Part shown: one piece after another, positions 1 through 25,400 of the stretch
How positions within the stretch are numbered: position 1 is the first letter of the stretch
Layout: each line of letters opens with the position of its first letter
Assembly (NCBI GenBank): GCA_054661495.1
Contig: BAAFSQ010000136.1
Span: 1-26,156 of the forward strand
From: Zygophlyctis sp. KS116
Lineage: Eukaryota > Fungi > Chytridiomycota
Direction of reading: 5' to 3'
DNA length: 26,156 nt
Notes under the pieces: generated by a model
What the model saw: the letters and a program-made list of their open reading frames with translations, nothing else
What the model was told of the DNA's origin: nothing
The model's database searches: none
Translations under genes and position numbers: made by a program

Positions 1-3000
1 TCAATGGAACTATCCCTTCATCAATTGGAAATTTGATAAATTTGGAATATCTGTAATAATTTCTAAATTTAAGATGAAAGTCGTCTTGACAGCAATAAAC
101 TCTCAGGTTCAATTCCTGCTTCAATTGGAGATTTGATAAATTTGCAAACTCTGTAATTATTTTCCTAAATTTAAAATTAAAGTTATCTTCACAACAATAC
201 ACTCTCTGGTTCAATTCCTACTAAGATTGGAAATTTGATAAATTTGCAACTTCTGTAATTATTTTCTAAATTTAAGATTTTAGAGGGCTCAACAACAATA
301 CACTCTCAGGTTCGATCCCTGCTTCGTTTGGAAATTTGACAAATATGATTTGGCTGTAATTATTTTCTAAATTTTAAATTCAAGTTATCTTTCTTACAAC
401 CAGCTCTCTGGTTCAATTCCTGCTTCGATTGGAAATTTGACAAATTTGCAAATTCTGTAATTATTTTTTAAATTTAAAATGAAAGTCGTCTTAACAACAA
501 TCCATCCTTAAGTGGAACTTTCACCCCAAGATGTGGAATGGATATGTAATACTTTTTTAATTATAATGATAAGATATGCTAGCGACACTTCTATTACGTT
601 ACTTTCCTGCTCTTGCACCTCAACATCCCCTCAATGTTGTTGGGTTGTCCGATCATGGCAGCAGATGGGAAAGACTACTTCAGTATCACCTACTAATACC
701 ACTGCTTGTTGCTCAATGACTGGTGTGACTTGTGATTCTACAAACAAGGTCACAATGCTAATGTGGAATGTCACAGGTCTTAAAAACTCAATCCCTTCAG
801 ATATTCTGAAACTCACAAGTTTAACTCAACTGTAAGTATTTTATTTGTTGAAAGATATAGTTATCTTCATCAAAATAGTCTTACAGGTTCAATTCCTTCA
901 GCAATTGGAAACTTAACGAACTTGATTCGACTGTAATTATTTTTAAATTTAAAATCAAAGTTCTGTTAGAGACAATCAACTCTCAGGTGCAATTCCTGCT
1001 TCGATTGGAAATTTGATAAATTTAAGAGATCTGTAATTATTTTCTAAACTTAAATTAAAGTCGTCTCTACAACAACCAGCTCTCAGGTTCGATCCCTGCT
1101 GAAATTGGAAACTTGCCAAATTTGCAACGACTGTACTTATTTTCTAAATTTAAAATTCCAGTGATCTTCAATCCAATCAACTCTCAGAACCAATTCCTGC
1201 CTCGATTGGAAATTTGATAAATTTGGAAGTTCTGTAATTATTTTCTAAATTTGAAATTAAAGTTATCTTCAAAACAATACACTCTCAGGTTCAATTCCTA
1301 CTACGATTGGAGATTTGACAAATTTGCAACGACTGTAACTATTTTCTAAATTTAAAATGATAGCGATCTTAACAAAAATCAACTCTCAGGTTCGATTCCT
1401 TCTACGATTGGAAAGTTGATAAACTTGCTCGTTTAGTAATTATTTTCTAAATTTACATGAAAAGTCAACTTTCTGGCAATCAACTCTCAGGTTCAATTCC
1501 TGCTGAAATTGGAAATTTGATAAATTTGCAACGACTGTACTTATTTTCTAAATTTAAAATTCCAGTGATCTTCAAAGCAATCAACTCTCAGGCTCAATTC
1601 CTTCCACCATTGGAAATTTGATAAATTTGCAGCATCTGTAATTATTTTCTAAATTTATATGAAAAGTCAACTTTCTGGCAATCAACTCTCAGGTTCAATT
1701 CCTGCAGAGATTAACAATTTGAAAAGTTTACAAGGGCTGTAATTATTTTCTAAACTTAAAATTAAAGAGCTCTTTCCGGCAATCAACTTACCGGTTCAAT
1801 TCCTGCTGAAATTGTAAATTTGACAAATTTGACTGACCTGTAATTATTTTCTAAAATTTAAATTTAAAGCATTCTCGAAAGAAATCAACTGTCAGGACCA
1901 ATTCCTGCTGAAATTGGAAATTTGATAAATTTGCAAGAGCTGTAATTATTTTCTAAATTTAAAATGAAAGTTTTCTTAACGACAATCAACTCAATGGAAC
2001 TATCCCTTCATCAATTGGAAATTTGATAAATTTGATAAAACTGTAATTATTTTCTGAATTTACAACGTTAGCTGGCTCCAGAACAATCAGTTCTCAGGTT
2101 CAATTCCTGCTGAAATTGGAAATTTGACAAGTTTGCAAGAACTGTAATTGTTTTCTAAATTTTAAAATAACAGCTACCTCACCAACAATAAACTCTCAGG
2201 ACCAATTCCTACAGAAATAGGAAAACTAACAAGTTTGACTGTTCTGTAATTTCCATTGAATATTTAATGAAAGTGCTCTTGGCTCCAACCAGCTCTCAGG
2301 TTCAATTCCTTCAGAAATTGGAAATTTGATAAATTTGCAACGACTGTACTTATTTCTAAATTTAAAATGATAGGGATCTTCAAAGCAATCAACTCTTAGG
2401 ATCGATCCCTGCTGAAATTTGGCAATTGTTGAATTTGCAAGTTCTGTAATTATTTTCTTAATTTAAAATTAAAAGTGCTCTTCAATTCAATACACTCTCA
2501 GGTTCAATTCCTTCTACGATTGGAAATTTGTTAAATTTGCAGGAACTGTAATATTTTCTAAATTTAAAATGAAAGTTATCTTTCCGGCAATCAACTGTCA
2601 GGTTCAATTCCTTCTACGATTGGACAATTGTTGAATTTGCAAAATATGTAAATATTTTCTAAATTTAAAATTAAAAGTGATCTAGCCGAAAATCAACTCT
2701 CTGGTTCAATCCCCCCAGAAATTGGACAATTGACAAGTTTGCAAACTCTGTAATTATTTTCTATATTTTAAATTAAAGTTATCTCCAATACAATACACTC
2801 TCAGGTTCAATTCCTGCTTCTACTGGAAATTTGATAAATTTGCAACAGCTGTAATTATTTTCTTCAGTTGAAATTTAAAGTGGTCTTTCCTACAATCGAA
2901 TCTCAGGCCCAATACCTTCCTCGATTGGAAATCTTAAGGCTCTGGTAGGCCTGTACGATTTATTCAATAATATTAAAGCGGCTTAAATGACAATTTACTG

Positions 3001-3172
3001 ACTGGAAATATTCCAAAAGAAATAGGAAACCTTATTAACTTAGATGCAGTGTAAACTAAAATTTCATTAAATCTAGATGGATAGGAAGAAATCAATTCAC
3101 TGGATCTGTTCCAGATGGATTTGGAAATTTCACAAACTTATGGTGGCTGTAATATAAGAGTACTAATCGTAG
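1..3172. repeat. Tandem array of ~101-bp units (72-nt LRR exon + ~29-nt intron), interrupted by cap exons at 486-831
   Basis: Recurrent core CTCTCAGGTTCAATTCCT...ATTGGAAATTTGA(T/C)AAATTTG and intron consensus GTAATTATTTTCTAAATTTAAAAT(T/G)AAAG with about 100-102 bp period. Confidence 0.95.
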
Positions 3173-3899
3173 AAATCTTGATGTCAATGACCTTGAAGGA
3201 CAGATGCCATCATTGGAGAAACTGACAAAACTAAAGGGACTGTAAGACTTATGTTCTAATTTGAAGTGTCATTGAGCACAACCCTCGCCTTTCTGGAGTT
3301 GTTAAACTTGGATCTCAAGTTAATACATCAGTGTATTCTTTTAATTATTTAATTTTATCAGCTATGCTCTTGATACAAATATTACAGCAATATGCGGTTC
3401 ATCATCTACGATAAGTTCACCTACTACATATCCTTTTAATGTAACAACTTTGGAATGCTTATCATCTGGAACTCCAACTGGATTAGTTAAAAGAACTATG
3501 GTAATATCTACTGCCCTGTCTGGGCTTCGTTTCTCTTGCAGTACAATTGATGGAACTCTCAATCCATATGCTGATTGTGCGAATCTTATGACTGCATTCT
3601 GTATGCCTGCTCAAGTTACTACTACGGCTGGAAAAAACCAATGCAGAAGTGTGGTTGACCAAGTCTTCTTTCAATTGAACCAGTTATGGATAAACGTCCG
3701 TAAAGAGTGTGGTCAGTGGCCATACTACGGATACAACAATGGTTCTGGTGCAAATTCCGAAACATGTACCACAGCAATTTCTTATCTGCGAGCAGGTGCT
3801 TATTACAAAGCATTTGATGGAAGTCAAGTTCCTATCTCTCAAGCATTTACTGAAAGTATGATGGAAGGACTATGGAGAAGAGCGGACTTAAATGCCTAG
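1..3899 (+). CDS. Multi-exon plant-type LRR protein, locus A (5' end outside window; >990 aa in window): LRR array 1, internal Cys-rich N-cap, LRR array 2, KR site, Cys-rich C-terminal domain
   Basis: Spliced by hand without a frame break. Exons: <1-52, 81-152, 183-254, 284-355, 385-456, 486-545, 574-831, then 23 consecutive 72-nt exons from 861-932 to 3077-3148, then 3173-3241, 3267-3332, 3362-3899 (TAG). All 32 introns are GT-AG, 24-30 nt, phase 2. Each 72-nt exon encodes xLxxNxLSGSIPxxIGNLxNLxxL (plant-specific LRR consensus). No transmembrane or kinase domain is seen at the C-terminus. Confidence 0.93.
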
Positions 3900-4026
3900 C
3901 TTTCATATCTCTAGAAACATTTTGAAATAAAATGGGACTATCAAATTGCCGATGAGCACTGTGCAGCATGACTATCCTCTACTACTACTTTGATAAACAG
4001 AAGTGCGTAAAGTTGAGTTTTATTAT

Positions 4027-4200
4027 TTACCACTCTTTCCCCTCATTCAGCAACCTTGTGCATATATTGAGAGCAGATTTGTTGACATCCGTTTCAGTCG
4101 GAGGCCATGCAATCCCTTCATCAAAGTCTGTTTTAATTGTTTTTACAACTAGAATCTTTGGACACTCATTTTGGATATAATCTAAAATTTCGGACATCAT
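4027..4200 (-). CDS. Short ORF (57 aa, MMSEILDYIQNECPKILVVKT...EGKEW), possible first exon or gene fragment
   Basis: ATG at 4200, protein-like composition, ends at TG|GTAAAT, which could be a donor site or an in-frame TAA. No family recognised. Confidence 0.25.
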   Translation of the reverse strand: MMSEILDYIQNECPKILVVKTIKTDFDEGIAWPPTETDVNKSALNICTRLLNEGKEW

Positions 4201-4391
4201 TTCAATGAGACTGAAATTTATTGTTTTAAATAGAATGCGGCAATGTGATTTAGAATCACTTGCGACAGCTAATAGAATAATCTCGAAAGAGAAAAGAGTA
4301 TCTGTAAAAACCTATGCTCATTTACGGTAAAAGATTGCTCCTATGATTCAATTAGAGTTCGGACGGCGGGTTATGATTACAGCGCCATAAG

Positions 4392-4538
4392 TCATAAACC
4401 ATACTTACAAACTCTATAAAACAACAAAAAAACTATAAAACTCCAAGAAAACAAAGAAACGTGAACGAATGAAACACGATCTCTTATCAACACTAGAACT
4501 GATATCTCTTTAAAAAATAAAAATAAAATGGTTTATGA
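4392..4538. mobile_element. MITE-like element, copy 1 (147 bp)
   Basis: Perfect 11-bp terminal inverted repeat TCATAAACCAT (4392-4402) / ATGGTTTATGA (4528-4538). A-rich interior (AAACTCTATAAAAC motif) shared with copy 2 at 17467-17659. No clear target-site duplication. Confidence 0.7.
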
Positions 4539-4730
4539 ATTAAATTTTGTTACTAGTAAAATCTATAATAATCAGATAGTAATAGCAAGTCGCGATTAAG
4601 TCCACGAACGCACTGCAAGGAAATTTTCCCAGTGATTTCCAGACCAGATTTGCTATAGGTTTTACTACAAGAACCTTGCTGTTAAATACTCTGCAACCCA
4701 CCGCATTCCCCTAAAATATAAGTTATTGCA

Positions 4731-7700
4731 ATGGAAAGACTCTCTATTGCTCATTCCAGGAGGGCATCAATAGATGTAGGAGACTTATTTCCAGCTGTGG
4801 AAGCAAGAATGTCTTCCAAAGGACGTCAATCATTAGATTCTAGAAAGTTGAGAGAATCGGTTCTAGAATTGCATCATTCGCAACAATTGTCGTTGGCGCA
4901 GGAATATTCGTCAAAAGGACGGCGCCAGTCGCGAAATGACAAAGATTTATTTCTCTTTAAATTAACTGAAAGGATTAATACTTCGTTTGTAGAGAAATTA
5001 AATCATCCCTGCATTCTATCAGAAGTTGCATGGGCATTCAGAGAACGAGTTCCGAAATCTAAAAATTCAAAAAATTCTATAGAATATTTAGACTGTTTTA
5101 CAGGTACAGTGGCTGTTGTAAATTTAAATTTGTTAAAATTAGGATACAATTAGTACACTTGTTGGTTGGTCGGACAGATCAGTTGCATTAATGGTTGGAA
5201 GATGTCTAGGAGCTCATGGTTTTCTTTTTGATGTTTTGTATTCATCGGAACTAGTAGATTCTTCAAAAGAAATTTTCAAGGTTAGAAAACCAATTACTTC
5301 TTTTGCGTCTTCTGCATCTTATTCTGGGAACTGTGAAAAGGATAATACACTTCCTGTAGGTGTATACACTCTAGTTAGTAATTGTTATTCATACACTTGT
5401 AAAGAAGGTTTATCTTGTTATTCAAATTTTTGTCCAAGGAAAACAGATTTAGAAACACTAGTAGAAAGAACACAATTTAAAAATGTAGTTGAAGAATCAG
5501 TACTAGAAGAAAAACTTTGGTTTAAAACAGTGCCGGAAGAAATACTTGAGGCGGTTTCTTCAGCTGAAAGGAAACGTCAAGAAATTTTATTTGAAATAAT
5601 TCAAACAGAAAGACAATTTTTAGATGACTTACAAACTGTTCAAAATGTATTTATTAAACCATTACTAGAAACTGATATTATTGAAGCTTCGCAAAGGCAG
5701 ATTTTTGTTGAAACTGTGTTTCTAAATATGACTGAAATATATCAAACAAATTCAAAATTAAAAAGAAAACTCTTATCAAGGCAAAGGGAGAATTTTGTTA
5801 TTAATGCAATTGGGGATATTTTTGCAAGTATTGCAGAGGAATGGTATGTATTTGTAGAATATGGAGCGGGTCAAGCATATGCAAAATATCTGGTTGATGA
5901 GGAAAAGGCTAATAATCCAAAGTTTTTGGCTTTTTTAAAAGTATTTTTAACTAGTATAATGTCAAGGAATGTGAAAAGAAGAAGGAATGTCGAAAATTGC
6001 CATTGGAGAGCTTTCTCTCTAGTCCGACAACTAGGATGGGTAGATATCCTCTCTTTTTAAATTCTTCAATTTCAAATTTACCAAAAAATCATCCAGACAG
6101 CATCACAGTACCTCAAGCATTGGAAACAATTCGTGATATTTTGAAAAAGATTAATTTTGAAGCTGGAAAGGCCGAAAATGCGCTCAAGTTATCTAGATTG
6201 CATGTTCAAATTGTCTTTACTCCAGGAGAGGAAGTTGTAATATTTTAATGTTCATTTTAGGATTTGATGTTAAAAAGCGAAAAACGAAAATTGATTAGAG
6301 AAGGGGTTCTTCATTACAGAAAAGCATCCGGTGATATAGAATTAACCGTGTTTCTTTTTGATCATATGTTCGTGATGACAAAAAAGAAAGAAAATGACAC
6401 TTTCAAAGTATTTAGAACTGTATTTTTCTTTATTATTCATCTAAATAGCCAATACCTTTAGAACTTCTTCTATGTAGGAGGGAATCTGTGTTTCCGACCC
6501 CTTTTGAATTCGATACACATGGGAAGATCAGTGCTAAATCCAATACCATCAACTCTGTTCGAACTTCCGTTAGTTCTGCTGCATCCTCTCCCAGCTTAAT
6601 TACGACCGCGGGAGGAAGGAGTGCATCTTTCACATTTGTGCATTTAGGTCGGAATGGGGGCTCAATGACTTTTTCCACATCTAGCATTGCAGATAAGCAA
6701 GCTTGGGTTGATGCAATGGAGACTCAAAGGAATCTTTTGATGGACAGCTCTAAATTTTTTGAGCTACAGCTTTTGAATGACAATTTTTTCAAGATATCCA
6801 ATCGTGTAAACTGCTCGGTTTCATATGCCGGAATGCTTTTGGTTGGAACAGATGACGGCTTATATGTCGGAACCGAACATAATGTTGACACTCCTTTATC
6901 AAGTCGACTGTTTAGGAAAGTTATTCAAGAGGAAAACATTTTGCAGGTTGATATTTTGCCTGATTATGATATGCTAATATTTCTAGCTGGTGAGATATAA
7001 AATTTTAATTGAAGATCGAAACCTTTTTTCCGTCACTTTAGATGTGCTCGACAATCCCGAGGATGACTCGGCAGCTGGAATTAGAAAGTGGAAAAAAATT
7101 GGTTCAAATGTATCCTTTTTCAAACTTGGAGTTTGTTCAGAACGTACTTTAATATCTGCCGTCAAATCAAGCTCACTGAGCGCAACCATAAAGCTTCTGG
7201 AACCAGTCGGTCTTGGTGGGAACAAGCTGAAAGGAAAATTTGGACGTTTATTTAAATCTTCCAGTGATTCTTTAAGAGTATATAAGGTAATAATAGAAAC
7301 CAATCAATTAATCAAAAGGAATTCTATATTCCAACCGAATCAAGGTCCATTCATTTTCTTCGAACAAAGCTTTGCGTCGGTTGTAGTAAAGGATTTGAAA
7401 TTGTTGATGTGGATTCATTAAATACTCAAGGTAAGTGATGTTAATTCAAAAAGTAGGATTACTAGACATGTCTGATCCAGATCTTAACTTTATTATAAGA
7501 TGGGACGGATTAGCTAAACCTCTTGCAATCTTCCGAATTCAGGATGGGGAATTTCTGTTGTGCTATAACGGTGAGATTTTATTGCTTATCATTAGAATTT
7601 GGATTTTTTGTCGATCAATATGGTAAAAGGTATCGAAAAGATTATCTTTTGTTTTGGACTGGTTATCCTACATCTTTTGGTAAAGTATTTGAATCTCATT

Positions 7701-7908
7701 CTTAGCATATATACATCCCTTCATTCTGGCATTTGAGCCGTCGTACATTGAAGTTCGTCGTTTACAATCTGGCGAAATTTGTCAAATCATTCCAACAAAT
7801 AATCTGCGCCCTCTCAATACTCACCAAGACTATCTTCATTTCGTTTATGATCAGTTTGATTCCCAAGCTGTTGCTAAAGTTGTTTTAACATCTGAAGAGG
7901 AATTATAA
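4731..7908 (+). CDS. ROM2: Rom1/Rom2(Rgf1)-type Rho1 guanine nucleotide exchange factor (DEP-DH-PH-CNH)
   Basis: DEP-like EYLDCFTGTVAVD...ALMVGRCLGAHGFLFDV; Rom-family motif GVYTLVSNCYSYTC...CYSNFCPR; DH start ERKRQEILFEIIQTERQFLDDL and CRKLPLESFLSSPTTRMGRYPL; PH FLFDHMFVMTK; CNH LLVGTDDGLY...EFYIPTES. Nine introns of 24-32 nt: 5118-5142, 5941-5966, 6237-6260, 6420-6448, 6990-7014, 7287-7318, 7431-7456, 7571-7595, 7680-7705. Stop TAA at 7906-7908. Confidence 0.92.
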
Positions 7909-7919
7909 ACATGTCTTTA

Positions 7920-8425
7920 TTAAGAATTAAACTCAATCACATTGTTTTCATCGCAATCAATGGAATTATCTGAATTTTCGAAAGGGGCAAGATGGGTGGC
8001 TTGTCTATTTGGAGGCATGTACTTTGTACATAATCCGTACAAAACGGGGCTAATATTAATAAACATTGTAGTACACGCTCGAAGGATAAGATCCCAGTGA
8101 TAATCCCAATTCCTCGGCTAGTGCATATTTGTCCATCTGCTGCTTAGGGGCATTTGACTCTACGTTTAATTATATCTGAAATACCTGAATTCATAACCGC
8201 CAAAGCCCCAACATACCCATTCCATTTCAAATAGTCTCTAATTAATTCATTGATAAGCATGGTCTCTTTAGCTGGCTGTGGAGTTGATTTTAATGGTTCC
8301 GGACAAATGCACGCAAAGAGCTTTGCCCGCAATGTTCCCTCAAGTGAGTCCAATGTACCATTGGATAATAATTTATTCTTGAGTACATTCTTTAACTCTT
8401 GAGAATCTGTGTCTAGAAACGACAT
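7920..8425 (-). CDS. CEP20: Centriolar LisH protein CEP20/FOR20/FOPNL
   Basis: ELKNVLKNKL..GTLDSLEGTLRAKLF, LINELIRDYLKWNGY, then after 25-nt introns at 8160-8184 and 8050-8074, ES...LAEELGL...VPVLYGL. This matches the short FOPNL architecture. Confidence 0.85.
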
Positions 8426-8490
8426 TTTAATCAAAAGCCGAAATATCGGAGATTCAAGTTAAAAATAGCATCTATCAACATATTCAATCA

Positions 8491-11400
8491 TTATAATTTA
8501 CGAAGTCCTAAAAATCCATGTCCAAGTGACTGCTTCTTTACGCCATGATAATGAATAGATAGTGTTGATTTTGATGGTAAAGCCAAAAAGTCAATTAGAC
8601 TTAGTCCGGAAACAGTACCCTCCTCCATTTTTCCATTTCCATGCATAATGTAACCAGACGAGTGATGGACTACATATGATGGTGAGTTGATTGCAGACAT
8701 CACCGATTCTCCATTTACAACGAGCTGGATTGACGGTTTTGTTTTTGTGAAAAATGCCAATGTGATTTCGTACAATCCGGCTTCAGCAACTTTGATATTA
8801 AAAGAATCTTGTTCCCATTGGAAGTTTTCTTCGTCTAAATTGAGTTGGTGAAATGATTTACCTGTATTACGAGTTTGAATATTCCATGGGACGGCGCTCC
8901 CTAATTTTAGGCGTCCAGACTTCCAAATCCATTGCGCACATCGATGAAATGGCTCGTAAAGTTGACTGGCCAAAATATTTTTACATGAACTTAAATCAGA
9001 ACACAACAAAAACAGCTTTTCGTCGAATTCTCGCCGAATTCGCTGTTCCAAAATCTCCATTTCGTCATCAGAGGGGGTGCTACCTTCTTTCCTTGCTCGG
9101 TCCAAGTTTTGTTTATTAGAAATAAGTTTGATTTTTTCATTAATTAAATTTTCTGTAAACTGCTTGATTGATTTTAAATCATTTTTGCCAATTTCAGCAT
9201 CTGACTGATCACTGGCAATATAAAATGAATCAGGAGTTCTTAGTTTGCTTTCCAAGGATTTAATCTGATTCTTAACATAAATTTCAAGATCTTTTTTAAG
9301 TTTGCTCTTAATCTTTTCATTTTCTGTATTTTGATCAGATTCTTCTAAAACATTTGTTAATCTGGCTGGAATTGCATTCATTTTCTTTTTAGCAACCTTT
9401 TTAAGCTCATCTCTGGTAGCCAAATGTTTTACTAGTTCTTCCAGCACATCGTTATCCACTTTAGTCTCAAATTTAGATTCGAGATCCACCCAAAGTTTGG
9501 ACATGTGTACAGATAACAAATGATCGATTTGAGGAGAGGATTTTTCGTCTTGTAAACTTTTAAGATTATTATTCATTGTCCGAAGAGTTTCACCTTGAGT
9601 AATGTATTCCGATTCGATGTTTTGGATGGTTGGATTGATTTTTGTTTTAATTATTGATTCAAGATCAACAATCTTTTCTTGTATTGCAGCAAAAGTATCT
9701 CTGGAATCTAAAGCGTTAGTAAAATATATAATCGTACCCTGAAATTTTGCAAAATTCAGAGACTGGTTCTGGTTAGAAGATATGATCTTATCATCCAAAG
9801 TCTTTATCAAAATAGCAGATATCTCCACCTTTTGTTTAACATCGTGAACATCTTTAGCCAGATCTAATGAATGAGAATAAACTACTATAGATACCTTTTA
9901 TGTTGATCGAGTTCAAAGGTTTAGCCATTGATTCAACTTCACCTATTCTTGCTGCAAGTACTGATAACCTCGTATTAACGTCCAGGTTGGATTGATGTAC
10001 TTTAGTCTGTTTCATCTGAATTCCCTGATTATCAATACTTTTCCTGACATCTGTGATATCTCTTTCAACTGATTTTAATTCTAGCGAAATTTTCTGTATA
10101 TCTGATTCAAACAAACTTAATTTAGGAGTTAAAGTGGATAAATTGGAAATATCGTCTTGATTCTTTTTCCAAATATTTGATGAAAATACAACTTCTTCAA
10201 TTTTCTTATGAAGATCAATATTAACAGCTGTAGAAGGAGTGTCCGATTTCTTTAAAATTTCTTTTGATAATAAAGAATTCTTTTCAGTTATTTTTTCCAT
10301 TTTTTGACTAATTTCAGCCATTTTTTCCTTGATGTAAGGAATATTTAGAGATGATAGTGAGTCCTTGATGGTGTTTGGAACAGTTACTTCATGTTCATTT
10401 AATTTCATATCAATGTATTCTTTCTGTTTGAGTATTTCGGATTTAAGCATGTTAATAGATGCCAAAACTCCTGTATCGTGAGCAGAAGTTCTATTCTTCT
10501 CCTGTAGATCTTTTGTTGTTTCTTTGAGGGACTCAACAGCCGACTTGAAATTATCGACAATATCATTGGTGGTTTTTTGTCCAGATTTAATTTGAGCGAA
10601 CCCAGTTTCTAGTAATTTTAAGCCTTCCTGAAGTGAGTTTATCCTTTTATTGTCAATTTCATGCATCTTTGAATTCGATGCAATAGTTTCTTTAGTGGAA
10701 TCGAACTCTTTGTGCTGTTCATTTGCTAATCTTTCGATTTGATTGACTCTATCGTCTATAATTTGAAGATGTCTTTTATTTGATTTGGGCAGTTCTGCTA
10801 ATGCGGAAGAGCATTGGTACATTTCATCTTTTAATTCCCGAAACTTATTTTCTAAATCCAACATGAGAGAATGCATTTCATTTTCATTAGATTTGGTCTC
10901 GAGCGCATTATTTTCATCATTGGTTTTGGGAATCTCTTTTTCTTTTAGAATTTGAGAATCAGTAACTCGATCCACCATATTTTTTAAGCTGCTTTCGACT
11001 ATTGATATTCGCTGATCTATTTCAGCATTGCGCACCTTTGTCTTTTCTAATGATTCTACAATTGACGATTGGGCTGATTCGATTTCATTCTTGAATCTCT
11101 TATACACTTCATTAGAATTGTGAAGTGAATCTATGTCGGCAGTATGCTTCTTTTGATTCTGCGTATTTATATCTATCACATTTTCTATCCTTTTTAGATC
11201 CTCTTGGAAAGCATCGATTTTTTGTGAAAGTCCACTGGCTGAACTTGAAATCAAATTTTCGAATTTTAAATCAGTTGACTTGCTTTCCTCTTGCAACTTA
11301 ACGAATTTTTCCTGCAACGATTCTACTTTTTGGGAAAGTTCCAAATTTAAATCATTCTTTATAGTTAAAAAATCTTTGATTACCGTTTTTGAATATTCTT

Positions 11401-12373
11401 CATTATTAGTAGAGTGCTGTAGAGCATTCTGTATAGCATCTTTCAATTCAGATTCTGTTATATATTTAGTATTTTCCTTATTTATAGTAGTTAATATTTT
11501 TTTAGTTTCATCTTGCAATATTACGCGGATCTGGACCATTATATCGTTTTGAATTTGTTGTTTAATTTTGTCATGACCACTTAAAACCAAATCATCAATT
11601 GATTCTAAAACATTAATATTTTGATTGGAACTGGTAATCTGATCTTGAATTTCGTTTTTTATCCATTCTTTAGTATGATTCTTTGTTTCTTTTTCTTGTG
11701 CTCTTTCTTTATTAATATGAGCTAGTACGTTTTGCATTCGATCAATATTTAATGAATTTTTTAGTTGATCAATTTGAATTTCTACTTCATTTTGAACCCA
11801 TTCTTTTGAGAAATTTGGTTCCTCCTTTTTCATATTCTGAATCGATCTATTAATTCTTCGTAGACTCCCTAGTTTTGAGTTTGATTTTCTATCCATTGAT
11901 GATTTTTCTGTAACGATATCAATATCATTGAGAGCATCCTTTAGATTTTTCATCGTTTGATCATGCGTATGTAATGCATCAAGTACCTGGGCAATTGCTG
12001 CATTTGATTGATAATTTATGATTGATCCTCTTAAGCTATGTCTTGACGATTCTTTTAGTTTTTCAATGGATCCAAAGACCGCCTTTACTTTATTAGCGTT
12101 TGGAATTATATCCTGATTCAGTTTAAAGTCCAATGTATAAGAACTTGAATCTATTATTTTTCCCGGACCATTATAAGCCTCAAGGAACCGTGATTTCTCA
12201 ATTGATTGATTGGAGGCAAGTTCGTCAATGCCCTGTAATCTTGGCTCAAATTCCAACTCTTGGGCATAATTAGGCGTTCGATTTCCAAGTAAAGATGAAA
12301 GCATTGAAGTAGTTCCAGTATCATCTGTATCTGATAATTGTCCATCGGGCGTAGTGATAAAGCGTCTTTCCAT
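8491..12373 (-). CDS. Large coiled-coil protein with a conserved C-terminal C1q/TNF-like beta-sandwich domain
   Basis: The 885-aa and 445-aa ORFs join in frame via intron 9864-9894. Probable further introns at 9708-9737 and 8835-8861. The C-terminus QWIWKSG...VPWNIQ..NT...AGLYEITLAFF...IQLVVNGE...GFLGLRKL resembles an uncharacterised C1q-like family I recall from flagellated protists. Start codon uncertain (MERRFITT at 12373 chosen). Confidence 0.8.
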
Positions 12374-12507
12374 TTTCACGTTAAATTTTCGCGTTAAGCG
12401 CGAGTGGACAGATCTCTTGGAGTTATTTTTTATAATGGATTCATGAATGTACATAATTTCTTCAAATTTCAAAAGATCCCAATCAATAATTTCGGAGAGT
12501 AAAAACT

Positions 12508-14263
12508 TCAAACCAGTTTCGCAATTGGTTCAGGATTTTTTGATACAACAGCTCTAAAGTAAGCTGTAATAGAAGTCTTTGTGCAAGATTCCAACCATAC
12601 CGCAGTAGCATTGGATTTGGTTTCAGTTCTAAAGTTGCTGACCCAGGATCCCCAAGTTTCATTACACACTGCTGGTTTTGACCAGAGTGAATCATCAAAA
12701 CTCGTAGACTGATTCCATCCAGCGGATGGATTGAGTATTGTTTTAAAAGAAGATAATCCAGTATCAGTAGCACCTGTCACTGTCTTCGGAACATCGTCTA
12801 CATATACAGCACCCAAAAAACCTGCGATAAGACCTTCATCAATAGCCTCTACTGCAACTACCCATGGACCATTTCCTGTCACAGTAAACTTGTGAGTATT
12901 GATCATATACCAAGCATAGTTAGGATTTACCGGAATTGTCTGCCCATCAACCGTTAATTTATAGCGGTTGTCAACGGCAATGGTAACCTTAATTTCATGT
13001 GAATTACCACATCTTTGTAAAGTAATTCCTGTTTCATGAGCGTGTCTAATATTAATTTCGAAAAAAACCACTACACTTCCATTCCACATCTAGGATGAAA
13101 TGTACCAGTCAGATTGTGATTTTTGTAGAGGCTTCTTTGAAATTTAGATAAGAAAATAGTTACAATGATCGCAAATTGGGTAATTCCCCAATTTTTGGTG
13201 GAACGGGTCCTGAAAATTGATTTTGGTTAAGGTGACTTTAATTATAAATCGTAAAATATGTACAGTTCAGTCAATTTTGATTTCTCCCCAAGCCAGGATG
13301 GAATGCTTCCACTGATATGATTCAAGGTAAGATCGCTTAGTCCTCAATTTTAAAATTACTTACAGAATTTCCAAATTCACTAAATTTCCAAGTTGTTGAG
13401 GAATTTTTCCACTTATACCGTTATATCCTAGCGAACTAAAATAATTAGAGTGAGAAAACGGTTACAGTTTTCGTAAGCTTTTCAAGTTTGTAAGTTCTTC
13501 TGGAATTGATCCGCCAAGACCTCGCAACCACCAATCGATTTCGATAACGGTTGATCCCTCGGACGTAACCCCCCGTATTCCACAAGTTCCAAAGAGGCTG
13601 CCCATATGAGCTTCTTCCTCACCTTCTAACAGCTGCCATGATCGGTAAACCCAGCAACAGTCCCTGGAATTTGAATCACAGGTAACTAGGGGTGTTTTTA
13701 GACAGCTATTCAGCGTGATTCCTGTATTTTCAACATTCCTAATAGCATTAATTCGAATACTTGTACACAGTATTCCAACATTGCCGATGAAGTTGGCCAG
13801 TCAGATTCTGATTCCCATACAAATAACTTGAGATTTAAATTTAGAAAAAAAACTACAGAATTTCCAAACTTTTTAAATTTGTCACATTTCCAAATTCCGC
13901 AATTGAACCAGAGAGTTGATTGTCGTTAAGATAACTTTCATTTAAGTGTAGAAATACTTACAGTTTTTGCAATTTTTCCAAACTTCCAATTTCAGCAGGA
14001 ATTGAACCAGAGAGACCTTGAGATGCCCAGGCAAGCTCAATAACTTTGCTTGTAGAATCACAAGTCACACCAGTCATTGAGCAACAAGCAGTGGCACTAG
14101 TAGGTGATACTGAAGTAGTCTTTCCCATCAGTTGCCAAGATCGGACAACCCAACAGCAGTCCGCAGATGATGAATCACAAGTAACTTGAGACTCTGCCCC
14201 TACAATGATTGCTGATACAATCAATACCCAGAGTTTAAAGTTGTTATTTCCAATATTGAACAT
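12508..14263 (-). CDS. Secreted LRR protein, locus B (508 aa): signal peptide, two N-cap/LRR/cap modules, C-terminal lectin/CBM67-like beta-sandwich domain
   Basis: Exons 14263-13962, 13934-13857, 13826-13767, 13738-13466, 13435-13364, 13335-13264, 13235-13164, 13134-13075, 13045-12508. Eight phase-2 introns of 27-30 nt give a continuous frame. Hydrophobic leader LWVLIVSAIIVGAES|Q; two CCWVxRSWQ caps; C-terminal DNRYKLTVDG, VVAVEAIDEG..AGFL, GWNQSTSFDDSLW, AYFR motifs. Confidence 0.9.
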
Positions 14264-14690
14264 TGCTTTTAGTTACAATTTAGTTTTCAGAACGGAAACT
14301 TCTATAAATAGATCTGAACTAAGCCAAGTTGACGCCGCTTAACGACAGAGTTTGAATCGCAAGAATCACTATTCATACCAGTAGTATAGATAAGGCACAG
14401 AATGATACCGTTTTTCTTGGCAGATGCTCTCTGCTAAAATCTGTTCAAAGTGTGGCATGTGACTTATGTTCATAAGGGTGATTAATGCCAAATATGATGG
14501 GTTGTGATTTTGTGCTCTATTCATACAAATATTTACTTTAATAGTAATTCTATACATACAAAATCTGATGAATTCTCAATTATTATTATCTGTGCTCCGC
14601 TCTCTGCTCAGATTGAATTCAATTTCTTTTGATTTGTGAGTGGCTGCTGGTGGCGCCTCTTTTGAGTTGGTTGGCGCCTATTTTTAGAGT

Positions 14691-14904
14691 TCGAAGCAAC
14701 AAAGACGGCAGCAACACAGCTGCTGAACAACTACTATCAAATCCACTCCACACTTCAGACTTGCCAACCCAGAGACCAAAGTTTTTCTTCCTCCAAAACA
14801 ATAAAAACAAATGGACATCGAAGCAACAAAGACGGCAGCAACACAGCTGCTGGACAACTACTATCAAATCCACACTTCAGACTTGCCAACCCAGAGACCA
14901 AAGT
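14691..14904 (+). repeat. Direct duplication of the HNH gene 5' coding region (14691-14782 vs 14818-14904)
   Basis: 92-bp and 87-bp copies differ by one substitution and a 5-bp indel. Confidence 0.92.
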
Positions 14905-15854
14905 CCCAGTGGCAGGCCGAGAACAAACGAGGCTTATTTCTGGGCATCATTCAGGAGGGAGAAGACTCGCACATCATTCAACTACACCACCTCCTGGCCA
15001 CCAACCAATTTACTCAACAGCAGGAATTCTCAACCACCTCCCAATTGGCAGACCCACAACATCCTCGCACCTTTATCGACGACATGTTTGCCCACTACAT
15101 CCTACCATTCCACAAGGATTACAGCGACACATCCACCTGCCACACTCCGCTTTCTTCAAACCCATCATCAAGAAGCAACTCTGCCGAGGATTTGGACTAT
15201 GTCCCGGATGAGAGAGAGCTGACCCACAAGGATTTGAAGAAGGCTGTCGAGAAGAGAGACGGAGTTTGTCTGTTTTGCTGGGGAAACAAGCAATTGGAGG
15301 CAGCTCACATTATTGCTCAAAAGAACATTCCAATGGCGTACGACGGACCATCACTCCTACTGCGAGCCGGTTTGACTCAGAAACACCAAGTACAGAACGG
15401 CTTCTTGCTCTGCAAAGTGTGCCACGGCGAATTCCACCAGCTGCAGCGATATGTGGATGTAGTGGACGAGAAGCTGGTAGTCAAGGTGGTCAACTACTCA
15501 GTTCTTGGAAAAGACGACAAGCACAGGGAATGGCAAGAGACTGTAGAAGATTTACAAGTGGTGCGTGGCAACAGGCAAAAACGCTGGACCGACATTGACA
15601 ACCGACAAGCAATCGAACCCAACGGTGAAATGGCCTTGTATTTCGTCGAAAACATCGAAACCCAACTACCAAACAGAGACGCACTAGAATTCCACAAAGC
15701 AGCGTGCCTTATTTGGCGCATGGCAGGCGGTGCTGAATCAGAGGATGAGCATTGCCCTGATGATGATGACTACGTTCCTGTTGACTACCGAAGCAAGAGT
15801 ATTGAGAAATGGATGGACTCGAGTGCTACTTTGGTTATCGAAAGTACTCAATAA
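14811..15854 (+). CDS. HNH endonuclease-domain protein (HNH_2 type, resembling Crinkler-associated nuclease domains), intronless, 347 aa
   Basis: RDGVCLFC (CxxC), LEAAHII, QNGFLLCKVCHGEFH (N, CxxCH), C-terminal LPNRDALEFH..ACLIWRMAGG. Visibly more GC-rich than the flanks and has no introns. Confidence 0.85.
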   Translation: MDIEATKTAATQLLDNYYQIHTSDLPTQRPKSQWQAENKRGLFLGIIQEGEDSHIIQLHHLLATNQFTQQQEFSTTSQLADPQHPRTFIDDMFAHYILPFHKDYSDTSTCHTPLSSNPSSRSNSAEDLDYVPDERELTHKDLKKAVEKRDGVCLFCWGNKQLEAAHIIAQKNIPMAYDGPSLLLRAGLTQKHQVQNGFLLCKVCHGEFHQLQRYVDVVDEKLVVKVVNYSVLGKDDKHREWQETVEDLQVVRGNRQKRWTDIDNRQAIEPNGEMALYFVENIETQLPNRDALEFHKAACLIWRMAGGAESEDEHCPDDDDYVPVDYRSKSIEKWMDSSATLVIESTQ

Positions 15855-16062
15855 AGCCGTGTTTTCATTCTTTATTTATAATAGACTGATTTCTGAACCA
15901 AAGCAATAGTTCTTATCGTAGTAAATGTCATGGTGTAATCGCTTCAAAAAGGGGCCTTTCTTCTCATCTAACCCGACCTCCATCTACGGCTTTTTCAGTC
16001 GTTTCTCTCAATCAGTGATTCGCAACGATGTTTCAGAATAAACGATTTACAGCTCCATTGAT

Positions 16063-16485
16063 TTATTTTATATTCAAATTCACGATACTATCAGATAGAA
16101 TCATGTCGTCTTGAGTGGATTGATTGCCATCCCTCTCTCCATCATCTTCAATTGAATGGAAACTGTATCCTGAGGCAATTGAGTTGTCGTCAATGTCAAT
16201 GGTTTCACGATATGGCGGCAAAGTCCCTTTCCAGAATGAGCTTGAAGAATAATTATCTGTGAACAGAGTTTTCGCTTCGTCACCGTCCAGCCAACGACGC
16301 CATTTTGTACATTCGTTGCGAATTGTTGTCCAGGGTAATCCAGAGTATACAAACATTGGGTAATCATTCAGAAATCGATAATAAACGATGTATAAATGAC
16401 ACATGGCGTATTTCCAATTGAAATGTTTTGTTGTATAATCGTTGAAATCCTTTTGATTTTCGAAACAAAGCTCCAAAGCTGCCAA
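16063..16485 (-). pseudogene. Apparently 5'-truncated ORF of unknown family (140 codons), possibly mobile-element derived
   Basis: Open frame begins at TTG just inside the 16493-16539 hairpin. Aromatic-rich helical segment (YRFLNDYPMFVYSGLPWTTIRN) and acidic tail. No introns seen. Confidence 0.45.
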
Positions 16486-16492
16486 TCAGAAA

Positions 16493-16539
16493 ATTACAAA
16501 TTGTAAACGACTTCAAAATCACAGTTTACAATTTGTAAT
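16493..16539. repeat. Perfect 16-bp inverted repeat with 15-bp spacer
   Basis: ATTACAAATTGTAAAC (16493-16508) / GTTTACAATTTGTAAT (16524-16539). Confidence 0.9.
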
Positions 16540-16573
16540 GCATGAAGAATCATTGAAATGACCAAACTGCTAG

Positions 16574-17442
16574 TCAACTTCAAGTGAATAAACTCTCAAG
16601 TTCAATCCCTGTAGAGATTGGGAATTTAGAAAGTGTGGTAGATCTGTAATCATTTTTAAAATTAATTTCAAGTCGGCTTTTCTTGAATCAACTCTCAGGT
16701 TCGATCCCTGCTTCGATTGGAAATTTGAAAAACTTGTCCTGGCTGTAATTATTTTCAAATTTAAAATTAAAAGTCAGCTTTACAACAATCAGCTTAATGG
16801 TTCGATCCCATCTACGATTGGAAATTTAACCAATTTGACTAGACTGTAATAATTTCTTAATTAAAAATGAAACTATCAGGGTCCGTTCCTGCAGAAATTG
16901 GGAGAGTAACCAATTTGCAACAACTGTAATCATTTTCTAAATTTAAAATTAGGCTTTTTTTGAACAATACATCATTAAATGGAGCTTATGCAAGTGTAAT
17001 ACTTTTGTTATATAAGTGAAATAGAGCAGCTAGCAAAACCAGTGTCATTCTATGTGATTGTGCCACGAAAGAATCCCCAGCATTTTCTTTTCCTCCCGAA
17101 AATACTCCCAAAGCATGTCTTGCAAGTAGTACAATAGGAGGAATACTAAGAAAAAGAGCTCAGATCTTCTCGTACATGGTTGATGGAAATCAATACACTT
17201 GCAATAACAACACTGAAGGCAATCCTTCCCAAGATTGTTTGAATTCATTGATTTTCTATTGCAATTCTGATAGACTCAATGGAGGAGTTTCTTCTGTCAA
17301 TGAATGCAAGAATAGAGTAGATGACATGTCTAGAAGTTTGAATGGACATTGGCAAACGTGGCGCTCTCGCTGTTCTAATTCCGCTTGGACATTTTCAAGC
17401 TCTAGAATATTAAATCCAAGACTCTATTATGGGATAGGCTGA
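16574..17442 (+). pseudogene. Headless LRR locus C: three intact 72-nt LRR exons, one broken exon, shortened cap exon, terminal exon with RKR and truncated Cys-rich domain
   Basis: Exons 16574-16645, 16673-16744 and 16774-16845 are intact. The next exon lacks its acceptor G and first ~19 nt (ATGAAA|CTATCAGGG at 16872/3). The cap exon 16953-16995 is 43 nt instead of 60 and shifts frame. Terminal exon 17025-17442 reads AASKTSVILCDC...ILRKRAQIFSYMVDGNQYTC...NPSQDC. No signal or N-cap exon is seen upstream. Confidence 0.85.
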
Positions 17443-17466
17443 AATGATCATTTACATTCATTCCTC

Positions 17467-17659
17467 TCATAAACCAACCTAAAAATCTATAAAACTCTAT
17501 AAAACACCAAAAAAACTATAAAACTCTAAAGAAAACACCAAAAAATCTATAAAACTCTATGAAACAGCAAAAAAATCTATAAAATCTCAAAAGAAACTAA
17601 AAAAAGAAAATCTTGATACAACATTGATATCGAAAAAAAATAAAAGGAATGGTTTATGA
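17467..17659. mobile_element. MITE-like element, copy 2 (193 bp) with ~4 internal ~30-bp tandem repeats
   Basis: TIR TCATAAACCA (17467-17476) / TGGTTTATGA (17650-17659). Internal AAAAATCTATAAAACTCTATAAAACACCAA-like repeats at about 17481-17600. Homologous to 4392-4538. Confidence 0.72.
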
Positions 17660-22434: not shown

Positions 22435-25400
22435 ATGTTTTTTATTGCCTCAAAAAGTATTAGAAATTACTTGTGGAAGCTAGTATTTACAATAGATGAT
22501 ACTATTATTCTGATTTCGGATACAATAGTAATGATGGGGAGTTTGCATGATTTGATTAAAGGATCGTTAAGTCCTTTCGGGACATTTGACTGCACAATAT
22601 TGACAGCGGCCATGGATTACAAGAGGAAATCTTTAATTTTGGCTTTAAGTGATTCTACAATCTGGAGTCTATCTATCCAGTCAAAGACTCTGATTGGGAA
22701 TTTTGAATCGCCGCATTTGATTTGTATTGATCATTTGTCAAGGGCACTGGTAGTTGTTTCGATACATGGTTTAATATCTTGGTGGAATTTAGATCGGGAT
22801 TCTATAAATGAGTCAAAGGTAATTACTAGATATACTTATTAATAGAATATGACATTCAAGGAACAAGGGATCTTATTAAATGCGACTTTTGTAGAGTCCG
22901 AGGAGTATAATTTAATCAATTGGGCGGCAGCATTGATAAGGTATTATTATTACAATTTATAGAATTCTAGAAATGGACAATTGTGGATTATGATTTATAG
23001 ATTAGATATGTTTGAATCATTGTCTAGTTTGGAATTGATTGGTAAGAAATGTGTTGGGGATTATCATCCGTTGCATTTGATTTCACTACCGGATATTCCA
23101 GGGACTTTGGCTTTAATCACGGTATACTTAACTGTGAATTAATCTTTAGGATTCAAATAATTTGTTTATAATTTCATTAAACAATTTCAAGACTGGGATT
23201 GGATGGAAAAAGGTTGAAATTCCAATATTTTCTAGGTCAATCATTAGTGATTTTGTGGCAATTTCGAATTCAAGTAAAAAAACAATTTCACAGTACTGTT
23301 ATATATCTACTGATTCCGGACAGCTATTAAAGGCTTTCATAACTGTTGTAGATTCTAGGTTTCAAGTTGAATTTACTCAATTACCAAAACTAAATCCAAT
23401 TTTAATGATTGGGTATTTAGGGAAATTTAAAGAATATGATATATTGGCTTTATTTGGGGATTTGTGTGAAGGAGCAATCGTAAAGGTTGGAAATGATGAC
23501 GTCTGCACGCTTAAAACATTATATAACACAAGTCCAGCTTTAGATTCAGTTTTAGTATCGGGAAAGACGTCTTCAAGGTTGATTTTAACTTGTGGGTCCA
23601 GGAATGGACAATTGATAGAGTATAAAAAGGGCTTACCAGTTGTGAATTTGGCATCGAGTGATAATGGTTTTGAAGGTGTAACTGGGATTTGGAGTCTTAA
23701 AAAGTCAGAGAACGACTTTCATCATTCTTTTTTGGTTATTTCATTTATTGAAGAAACTCGAGTAATGCAATTTAAAGGTATTGCGTTATATATTGATTAA
23801 TGAATAGATTCTGCTTTAATAGATGTATCTGATTCCCTAGGTCTCATGATAGACTGCCCTACTATTTATGTTAATCATGTCCATTTCAATTCAGAAACAT
23901 TTTACTGCCAAATCACAGATAGGCATGTTTTTGCTGTTAACAGTGACATCTCTATTAGATGGAGCTGCGAATCTAAAATTATCAAGGGTTTTATAGAAAA
24001 TGGAATAATTGTTGTGACTACATCGTGTCGGAGGCTATTGATTCTACAACTTATAACAAATTCTCACGGAAACTACAAAATAAATGAAATAGACCAGATT
24101 AAATTAGGTTGTGAGGTGGTTTGCATCTCTTGTATAAAAATGTCGGAAAGGTACATGATCTAATTATAATCTTAGTGGTGTTGCTGACAATATTTCAAAT
24201 ATTTTCGTGCTAGGGACTTTTAATGCTTCCCTCTATTTCATAGCTCTTGAAAAGGAAGGTGTGATAAAGGAACTTGGTCAGTATATATTCTGCGAACCAA
24301 ATTTCGACAGGAAGTCTGCTATTCCAAACTCAATGATTATTAAGAAATTGCAAAATGGTGCTTGTATGCTTCTCGTAGGTTTCAGAAACGGGACTTTGTC
24401 ATATTTAAATTTGGATATTGATGAGATCGTCAAAGGGCCCAAGTTTCTTAGTCTTTGCATTTCTGTTCTGCAGTCTACATCCCTTGGCTCTGCACCTGTA
24501 TCTGTTATTTACTCTGCTGAGAATTTCCCTATCATTGGATTTTCTGATATGACAGCCTGTTTAAGTTTGAAAAGCGATACTTTTGGTGTAAAAAACGTTC
24601 TTATTGATCAGGTAATTTTCTTTATCATGTTAAAATTAAAAGATTGGCTTTTGCACAGGCTTTATCTTTGAAGACTTATCATCATTTTCTTTCATGATCA
24701 TTTCAAAATGTGCACTGCATTCCATTAAAATTTCAACAAGCGAATCACACTCTGTACAGAGTTACCCTCAATCCGAGACCCCTCGCAGGATAATTCATGA
24801 TAGTGCTTTGGATAAATTCATCGTGGCTTCATCAAGATATGAAAACTCTTCAATATATTCTCAATTGAAACTGCTCTCATCAAACTTTGAAAGGACTCTA
24901 TGTTCTTACAGTTTTCCCAAGGGAGAAATAATAACGGAATTAAATCGTATGAATTATACTTAGTAATTTTAGGATGGGAAGCCCCAGGAAAGAATTATAT
25001 CACTATTGGAACGTGTGAATACATTGATCCGAGTGTCAACGATCTAACTTTTGCACGAGTCATCGTCTTGGGACTTAAATCAAAGCCTGTAATAATTTAA
25101 AATTTATCATTTGACAGGGGAATGATTACAAATTCAAGAAATTAGGAGAAATAGTTCTAAATGAGAAAAGTATAAATTGTATAAAGACATTACAGACAAA
25201 GTATTTTTCAAAATTTAATCCTAGTTATTTAATAGTCGGCGCTGGAAAGACACTCTACAGACTAAAAATAGAAAAAAATCAAGATACAGATGAAAGAAAA
25301 TTAACAATAGCAGAATCTACAACCGTACAATGGCCCATCGATTGCATTGATTGTTTTCCTGTTTTAGGAGGAGAACTTATCGCCATAGGCTGTCAACGGG

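Follow-up and report, generated by a model that had tools for sequence, protein, structure and literature searches.

A dispersed family of extracellular LRR proteins in a chytrid fungus, apparently diversified by short-tract exchange

How chytrids choose their hosts, and how host-specific strains arise in plankton blooms, is an open question. The window analyzed here (26,156 nt, contig BAAFSQ010000136.1 of the chytrid Zygophlyctis sp. KS116) contains three loci built from LRR exons, one repeat to an exon, which a preliminary description put forward as a candidate combinatorial repertoire of secreted recognition proteins generated from exon cassettes. What kind of family is this, how does it vary, and what might its products be for?

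A large family of plant-type LRR proteins

The three loci do share an exon kit joined in phase 2; loci A and B read through, and locus C is a broken relic (Table 1). The 32 introns of locus A (GT-AG, 24-30 nt) are in phase 2 at 32/32 junctions and leave a single stop-free frame of 995 codons; retention of any one of them (32/32) breaks the frame or brings in a stop. This exon model was drawn by hand and then again by an automatic splice parser that had no phase rule, although locus A was among the sequences on which it was trained. The second module comprises 23 exons of 72 nt and one of 69 nt, separated by phase-2 introns of 24-30 nt. The nine exons of locus B (302, 78, 60, 273, 72, 72, 72, 60 and 538 nt, in order) form two modules with one and three LRR exons.

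Table 1. Coordinates of the LRR loci and associated elements in the window
Feature	Position	Strand	Description
Locus A	1-3899	+	33 exons; 5' end cut off at contig edge
Locus A, module 1	1-545	+	Five LRR exons and 60-nt end-cap exon (486-545); 5'-cut
Locus A, start of module 2	574-831	+	Linker, Cys-rich N-cap (CCWV motif; 83 cap matches in genome) and first LRR
Locus A, module 2	861-3241	+	24 single-LRR exons; plant-specific LRR class
Locus A, end-cap exon	3267-3332	+	66 nt
Locus A, last exon	3362-3899	+	Remaining C-cap, Lys-Arg, then six-cysteine domain of ~134 aa
Family 3' element near locus A	4373-4538	+	A-rich tandem repeats, terminal TGGTTTATGA
Locus B	12508-14263	-	Intact; 9 exons, phase 2 throughout
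Locus B, exon 1	13962-14263	-	Signal-peptide-like start, N-cap, first LRR
Locus B, middle	13075-13934	-	78-nt LRR exon, end-cap, linker and second N-cap (13466-13738), three 72-nt LRR exons, end-cap
Locus B, last exon	12508-13045	-	Beta-rich domain with a weak likeness to CBM67-type lectins of fungi
Locus C	16574-17442	+	Relic without cap; frame broken twice
Locus C, LRR exons	16574-16845	+	Three intact 72-nt exons; upstream without cap or start codon
Locus C, broken exons	16846-16995	+	LRR exon minus acceptor and 5' part; end-cap shortened to 41-43 nt
Locus C, last exon	17025-17442	+	Lys-Arg site and shortened six-cysteine-type domain
Family 3' element behind locus C	17443-17659	+	Directly adjoining locus C

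An assembly artefact at locus A can be rejected as far as is testable: the frame is open over 32 junctions, the longest exact internal repeat is only 54 nt, and contigs from two other runs match it with zero differences over 1196-1486, 1659-1834 and 2834-4092, in separate pieces that each cover part of the array and from runs that may represent the same strain. Downstream, a family-wide 3' element is detached from the locus A stop by ~470 nt. Inspection gave no support to reading this element as the end of a Helitron or other transposon; it is probably a 3' UTR, the likelier reading since a related spliced transcript stops at the same point.

Far from having few members, the family extends across the genome, with at least 83 N-caps, 123 LRR exons, 32 end domains of A-type and 7 of B-type; besides 72 nt, LRR exons may measure 69, 75 or 78 nt. 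Allowing up to three mismatches, there are 68 occurrences of the 31-nt intron consensus and none in the control, so the repeat-intron pattern is not due to chance. In genes parsed with no phase penalty, 347/368 family introns lie in phase 2 versus 67/321 elsewhere in the genome. Family introns measure 20-34 nt and tiny introns are general in this genome (median 27 nt in other genes); the phase-2 rule alone is peculiar to the LRR family.

Across the ~40 loci parsed into gene models, the layout is a signal peptide (assigned by eye and hydrophobicity), one to four modules of N-cap, 1-24 LRRs and C-cap, and a swappable last exon; members differ in how many repeats and modules they have and in their C-terminal domain, as had been proposed. 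The C-termini may be transmembrane, GPI-like, PAN, lectin-like or six-cysteine with a conserved KR. Members with a transmembrane helix and a short cytoplasmic tail are a minority, most being soluble. The LRRs belong to the plant-specific 24-residue class with a GxIP consensus, and among solved structures a full-length relative is matched best by the plant ectodomains of GSO1, FLS2, MIK2 and the ERECTA family (E 1e-110 to 1e-66), in keeping with the proposed plant-type, secreted or surface-anchored family. The cap resembles Pfam LRRNT_2 in motif only, with no match at E up to 1. No kinase was found directly behind any cap match in the genome, and a Roc-COR GTPase is absent from the ~40 parsed gene models and eight full-length relatives.

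From its sequences the source organism is placed as a fungus and no more narrowly, its branch being long and its relatives environmental; a one-gene tree did not place it. The literature search found no paper on this LRR family. Its spliced transcripts exist in lakes: one RNA run shows a period of exactly 72 nt, and full-length reading frames free of introns were found. No alternative splicing was evident: the few assembled transcripts of one gene keep the same repeat order, which is a weak test, and the RNA run was thin.

A hypervariable face under selection

Entropy within the repeat peaks at positions 22, 23, 1, 3 and 4, five hypervariable residues in the strand split by the intron, and 227 repeat units yield 218 distinct faces. 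Identity is 0.39 at face codons, against 0.77 in introns and 0.76 at framework third positions. Counting methods, rather than a codon site model, give a pN of 0.62 versus a pS of 0.45 at the face, and 0.075 versus 0.20 in the framework. Silent differences are also elevated at face codons, which could reflect whole-codon replacement or counting artefacts.

The concave-face hypervariability anticipated by the preliminary description is accompanied by an amino-acid excess between lake populations. Locus B differs from a copy from another lake at 38/651 replacement, 2/192 silent (p=0.003) and 2/143 intron positions, an excess of replacement over silent and intron differences of about fivefold (p=0.0003 with introns included), and in the end domain following the KR, comparison with three lake copies gives a pN/pS of 1.7-2.6 (p=0.02 for the excess); these copies from other lakes may be recent paralogues rather than alleles, the B-like one having a LINE upstream of it.

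A tandem expansion of the ordinary kind, close to neutral and with exposed residues that simply drift, would fit the tolerance of exposed LRR positions to change, the passive recombination of repeats and the presence of pseudogenes. Both the replacement excesses and a face far more diverged than the introns run counter to it, and neutral expansion is largely refuted; we hold it to be most improbable.

Exchange below the scale of the exon

Exchange between loci, as first suggested, is recorded in exact tracts of 40-80 nt common to 37 pairs of genes on different contigs. Exact runs of at least 40 nt were found in 36 unit pairs, compared with 0-1 in codon shuffles. Identity flanking the tracts is at background (0.73 vs 0.71), and 36/37 pairs occupy different array positions. 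The pairs are not independent events and the ends of tracts are biased towards variable sites; subject to this, tracts start inside exons in 28/37 cases and end inside exons in 20/37. Units are about as alike within an array (0.747) as between genes (0.733) or between neighbors (0.743), and local tandem duplication was rejected as the main source of repeats, neighboring units being no closer than others. Duplicated blocks, one of 210 nt and one of 139 nt, do occur in two loci. A gene from another lake is ~90% identical to locus A over the second cap, the next exon and introns before dropping to ~75%, and this same-cap relative terminates in a different KR-type domain.

These patterns bear directly on the idea that whole exons are shuffled as cassettes with breakpoints in introns, with or without exon skipping. 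Such shuffling would be favored by the perfect phase-2 symmetry and conserved introns, by the 210-nt duplication and one 80-nt inter-locus tract that start in an intron, and by end domains exchanged as entire last exons; exon skipping has, moreover, been reported for brown-algal ROCO genes (PMC11378527). However, 0/227 exons are shared whole by two genes and most tracts begin within exons. Similarity of neighboring 15-nt segments is almost unlinked within an exon (enrichment 0.8-1.8) and is not stronger there than across the acceptor (2.0-2.6), and any duplication of one 101-nt period would keep the frame whatever its start point. As to skipping, dropping a 72-nt exon requires a 130-nt intron, whereas parsed introns are about 23-34 nt. 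The cassette claim thus does not hold for the exon, and exon shuffling is an unlikely source of the diversity. Judged from the sequences, the family appears instead to draw on short-tract conversion from a genome-wide pool, in which the exon is not the moving unit.

A programmed system resembling that of lamprey VLRs has also to be weighed, in which a dedicated enzyme would rewrite repeats at a set life stage and relics such as locus C would serve as donors. The layout of cap, variable LRRs, cap and stalk or anchor is VLR-like, exchange is a patchwork of short tracts, the window holds a capless relic, and contigs of runs X2 and X3 contain many mixed joints, which paralogues alone would also explain. 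Against it, the genes in the genome are complete and their 29-nt introns are too small for spare or inverted cassettes. The unique part of locus A is identical in two runs, and the same transcript sequence recurs in two separate runs. The single APOBEC-type match is weak and under the cut-off, itself a weak negative for one profile searched in a draft genome with split exons. VLR-like assembly is accordingly disfavored, and we consider it highly unlikely.

End domains and a candidate payload

The commonest end domain follows a dibasic site, at 3489-3494 in locus A. KR or RR is present in 71/83 aligned relatives, the six cysteines are 98-100% conserved, and the confident part of the predicted model starts immediately after the KR. 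The domain forms 142 clusters at 50% identity, environmental where checked, and it also occurs without LRRs in tandems of signal, domain, KR and domain. It had no Pfam match, and no known fold was found for it: the best Foldseek hit had an E of 0.64, the best VIA hit a Z of 5.0 over 66 residues and the best Atlas hit a TM of 0.33. It is a widespread protein whose model is confident yet matches no structure. The genome carries a kexin-like gene, with an S8 protease and a P-domain adjacent on one contig, and by its sequence the small end domain is probably cleavable at Lys-Arg.

The end domain of locus B, which paralogues carry at the N- or C-terminus, matches Pleurotus-type lectins (6KBJ/6T0Q) weakly (E 0.5-1.8) and a lectin cluster in Atlas at 0.89; its predicted model has a pLDDT of 32.

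Do such proteins serve attack or defence? A defensive role, with viruses, bacteria or hyperparasites of the fungus or fungal cells of non-self origin as targets and the released domain as an antimicrobial, would leave the same signatures of diversifying selection. It would suit the RLP-like members with a transmembrane helix, and also the half sequencing depth over the unique part of locus A, which suggests presence-absence or strongly diverged alleles. None of the cap matches is directly followed by a kinase gene, cytoplasmic tails are short and the majority of members is soluble, all of which weighs the other way, as does a seagrass chytrid genome whose abundant LRR families are discussed as host-associated (PMC13618815). 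Defence is, in our assessment, possible but doubtful.

Relation to known systems

A close likeness is to brown algae, whose ROCO and LRR-kinase genes encode one 24-residue LRR per 72-nt phase-2 exon (Zambounis 2012, PMC3341825; Teng 2024, PMC11378527). These algal genes likewise recombine within and between genes, vary in repeat number and show positive selection on the concave face, but the ROCOs encode a Roc-COR GTPase and have long introns that contain spare exons. The chytrid proteins are secreted or anchored, with repeated capped modules, 29-nt introns free of spares, swapped end domains, the novel KR-linked domain and exchange below exon scale. Their exons follow the algal 'type II' cut, which was not shuffled according to the 2012 study (PMC3341825). 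By analogy, the chytrid family may be seen as working like the ROCO repertoires, but in secreted form.

Plant LRR-RLP/RLK and PGIP proteins share the ectodomain matches, GxIP consensus, Cys caps and, in some members, a helix with a short tail; the chytrid family differs in having no adjacent kinase, no Pfam LRRNT_2 cap, several capped modules per chain and a fungal genome. Lamprey and hagfish VLRs share the cap-LRRn-cap-anchor layout, the hypervariable concave face and a conversion-like patchwork, but are assembled somatically by cytidine deaminases from an incomplete germline gene, where the chytrid genes are complete. Among chytrids, the Lobulomycetales MAG SGEUK-03 has high-copy 'LRR-RLK' orthogroups, common to other chytrids and proposed for host sensing (PMC13618815). 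By description, these resemble the present family in being LRR families of high abundance, and their chytrid is host-associated; that paper, where the word intron never appears, does not deal with exon structure, selection or end domains. Finally, Kex2-processed pro-domain (K2PP) fungal effectors are secreted precursors with a dibasic site and a disulfide-rich mature domain (PMC8528282). The chytrid proteins likewise have a conserved dibasic site ahead of a disulfide-rich domain, with a kexin in the genome; in place of a short pro-domain, however, their N-terminal part consists of a folded LRR array under positive selection, and their mature domain is without a known fold.

Discussion

We regard as probable a dispersed family of extracellular LRR binders that an arms race selects for change and that ordinary homologous recombination diversifies in the germline. 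With a near-constant repeat core and a near-constant 29-nt intron, each of hundreds of 101-nt units would be homologous to all others, and it is from this mutual homology that we infer short gene-conversion tracts rewriting faces across loci. Unequal crossing-over would alter repeat number by whole units, and universal phase 2 would allow modules and end domains to be swapped in frame. In the commonest type, kexin would cut after Lys-Arg, freeing a disulfide-bonded domain of ~130 aa that is itself selected to change; the LRRs may thus act as the address and the effector-like peptide as the payload, with other members serving as membrane-bound sensors or adhesins. The likeliest partners are proteins that an algal or other planktonic host secretes or carries at its surface, with an enemy of the fungus as the alternative.

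A bolder version of this mechanism is conceivable, if distinctly unlikely: a targeting system of the fungus whose address would come from an LRR library driven by recombination, and whose payload would be a domain of new fold released by kexin. Conversion, concentrated on the face codons, would then proceed quickly enough for variation to arise within one bloom season or one clone, giving this single-celled fungus an anticipatory repertoire. As it stands, the family looks like an arms-race recognition repertoire whose variation comes from ordinary copying of DNA and not from any proven immune-style assembly.

Extracellular LRR receptors were earlier described as nearly absent from fungi (PMC2939053); here a lake-dwelling fungus has a family of dozens of genes, with diversifying selection between lakes. 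The family indicates that one-repeat-per-exon layouts can be remixed at sub-exon scale, and it adds a third setting for LRR repertoires beside brown algae and jawless fish. For the biology of chytrids, it provides a concrete and testable candidate for host choice.

The LRR gene family

The LRR genes of this contig belong to a family that is real, large, expressed, selected and recombining. Nearly every detail of the exon kit originally described for loci A, B and C was confirmed by a hand model of A and a splice parser. A 101-nt period runs through window positions 24-501 and 884-2887, each unit comprising a 72-nt exon and a GT-AG intron of 24-30 nt. Locus A forms one open frame of 33 exons with 32 phase-2 junctions, a model that the parser, trained partly on A, reproduced without a phase rule. 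Locus B is intact, with nine exons, two capped modules and a last exon unlike A's; locus C comprises three good LRR exons and two frame-broken exons, with neither cap nor start. Phase 2 characterizes 347 of 368 family introns versus 67 of 321 introns of other genes, while tiny introns occur genome-wide (median 27 nt) and hence, unlike phase, are not specific to the family.

A genome search with caps, LRR exons and introns bore out the expectation of a large family: the counts, all lower bounds, are 83 Cys-rich N-caps, 123 LRR exons and 68 close copies of the intron, besides end domains of the A type (32) and B type (7). A single grammar governs all of the approximately 40 loci parsed, roughly two thirds of the total: a signal-peptide-like start, one to four modules (a cap, then 1-24 LRR exons, then an end cap) and one last exon. 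The commonest last exon encodes a Lys-Arg (KR)-linked six-cysteine domain; others encode a PAN pair, a transmembrane helix followed by a short tail, a Thr-rich stalk whose end is hydrophobic, or next to nothing. The B domain sits at the N-terminus in two genes, at the C-terminus in others and at both ends in one. The repeats belong to the plant-specific LRR class, and nowhere in the genome does a kinase match directly follow a cap match. Matches to the cap, sought among proteins 0.55-1.75 times the query length, and to the end domain all fall in metagenome-type records that name no organism.

Two loci of a different species (L072 and L073, JGI sample 3300045541) share the exon grammar, one gene having three capped modules, and possess their own intron consensus, introns thus being homogenised within each species. 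Two cysteines found in most paralogues, one in the end cap and one in the exon after it, are missing from locus A (window 3267-3460), consistent with loss of a disulfide pair.

The assembly (12.7 Mb, 1175 contigs) is represented in freshwater metagenomes. The label of probable chytrid is fair: the best named matches of a housekeeping protein encoded on one of the family's contigs are chytrids, at only 46-49% identity, and a one-gene tree places this protein on a long branch among environmental sequences. The RhoGEF-PH-CNH gene of the window is of a fungal type.

Expression and upstream sequences

In a lake RNA run, two contigs covering LRR exons show an exact 72-nt period free of introns, and are therefore spliced transcripts of paralogues. 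Short contigs also carry reading frames that lack introns, span 394-621 residues and follow the complete grammar. Because the contig of one such frame terminates in the A-rich element known behind KR-type genes here, this element is probably a conserved 3' UTR. Assembled transcripts gave no sign of isoforms, although this is a weak test. Upstream of their start codons, six loci on different contigs (L035, L043, L051, L042, L044 and L011) have 100-330 nt in common as mosaics at 74-94%, and promoters thus seem to be exchanged between family members as well.

The KR-linked domain

An alignment of 12 copies, at 26-86% identity, shows Lys-Arg to be invariant, and KR or RR occurs in 71 of 83 wider relatives, among which the six cysteines after the site are 98-100% conserved. 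A structure model is confident from just past this site (mean pLDDT 77, pTM 0.78) and found no fold match among solved structures or in the Atlas; the domain may represent a new fold, though an unmatched model is no proof. LRR-free tandems of two such domains joined by Lys-Arg (contig C27 5143-5991 of this genome, G000; protein relatives P0059 and P0108) present the end domain in polyprotein form. The genome also encodes a subtilase with a P-domain. We infer a putative release of a free, disulfide-bonded protein, for which the LRR part would serve as the address. Distant KR-type pairs also occur behind an unrelated N-terminal domain with a Met-Gly-Ser start and no signal peptide (P0166, P0175 and P0185).

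Selection on the face and end domain

Variation is highest at five positions around the strand that the intron splits, and 218 of 227 faces are different; identity is 0.39 in face codons and 0.77 in introns. Selection was tested by counting differences. Between B and an other-lake copy of 95% identity, 38 of 651 replacement sites differ against 2 of 192 silent sites (p=0.003) and 2 of 143 intron bases, with the replacement differences clustered in the second cap. The post-KR domain likewise shows a replacement excess against three lake copies (p=0.02 pooled for two of the three). In each of two runs, depth over the unique part of A is roughly half that of the housekeeping contig next to it (34.6 versus 66.5 and 83 versus 144, contig depth being a rough measure); in a diploid, an allele that is hemizygous or has diverged strongly would give this ratio.

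Exchange between genes

Units of the same array are significantly, but only slightly, more similar to each other than to units of other genes (0.747 versus 0.733), and neighbouring units are no closer than others within an array, which suggests that arrays draw on a genome-wide pool. Exact runs of at least 40 nt number 36, versus 0-1 by chance, with flanks at background identity and unequal array positions. For instance, 80 nt of locus A recur in a gene of a different contig, while non-adjacent units within A have stretches of 54 and 47 nt in common. An other-lake gene resembles A over the second cap and next exon, introns included, before diverging inside the following exon. The proposal that diversity arises by shuffling or conversion thus holds as regards exchange, but not as regards the exon as cassette: no whole exons are common to different genes, and tracts end mostly inside exons. 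The best reading of these sequence comparisons is short-tract ectopic gene conversion with unequal crossing-over. A conserved core and conserved intron would prime both processes, while phase symmetry would serve swaps of modules and last exons.

Window neighbourhood

Contigs from two other sequencing runs (X2 and X3) depart from the window at 4204, where a lake contig match also ends and a multi-copy stretch (4204-4540) begins; the junction between A and the RhoGEF gene may be peculiar to one haplotype or a misjoin. The 140-codon frame may mark the event that removed the 5' part of C. Upstream of the B-like other-lake copy (L070) lies a LINE (endonuclease, RT, RNase H) where the window has the HNH_2 gene.

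Features of the window
Feature	Position	Strand	Remarks
Locus A	1-3899	+	
ROM2-like gene	4731-7900	+	RhoGEF, PH, CNH; introns about 25-30 nt, otherwise ordinary
Long coiled-coil gene	8491-12511	-	no clear family; begins right behind locus B stop
Locus B	12508-14263	-	
92-nt direct repeat	14691-14782 and 14818-14904		by HNH_2 gene
HNH_2 gene	14811-15854	+	intronless, GC-rich (about 47%); between B and C
140-codon frame	16063-16485	-	no Pfam match; close on the 5' side of locus C, which has no cap
Locus C	16574-17442	+	
Multi-exon gene	22500-26074	+	DDB1/RSE1-type propeller resemblance by eye

Relation to known systems

Among described systems, the brown-algal ROCO repertoire (PMC3341825, PMC11378527) comes closest and works similarly, although the present family is not a member: it is extracellular and lacks both Roc-COR and intronic spare exons. 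Judged by the features that could be checked, the family is not a VLR system. Fungi were reported to have almost no LRR receptors (PMC2939053), and abundant LRR orthogroups have since been noted in chytrids without structural detail (PMC13618815).
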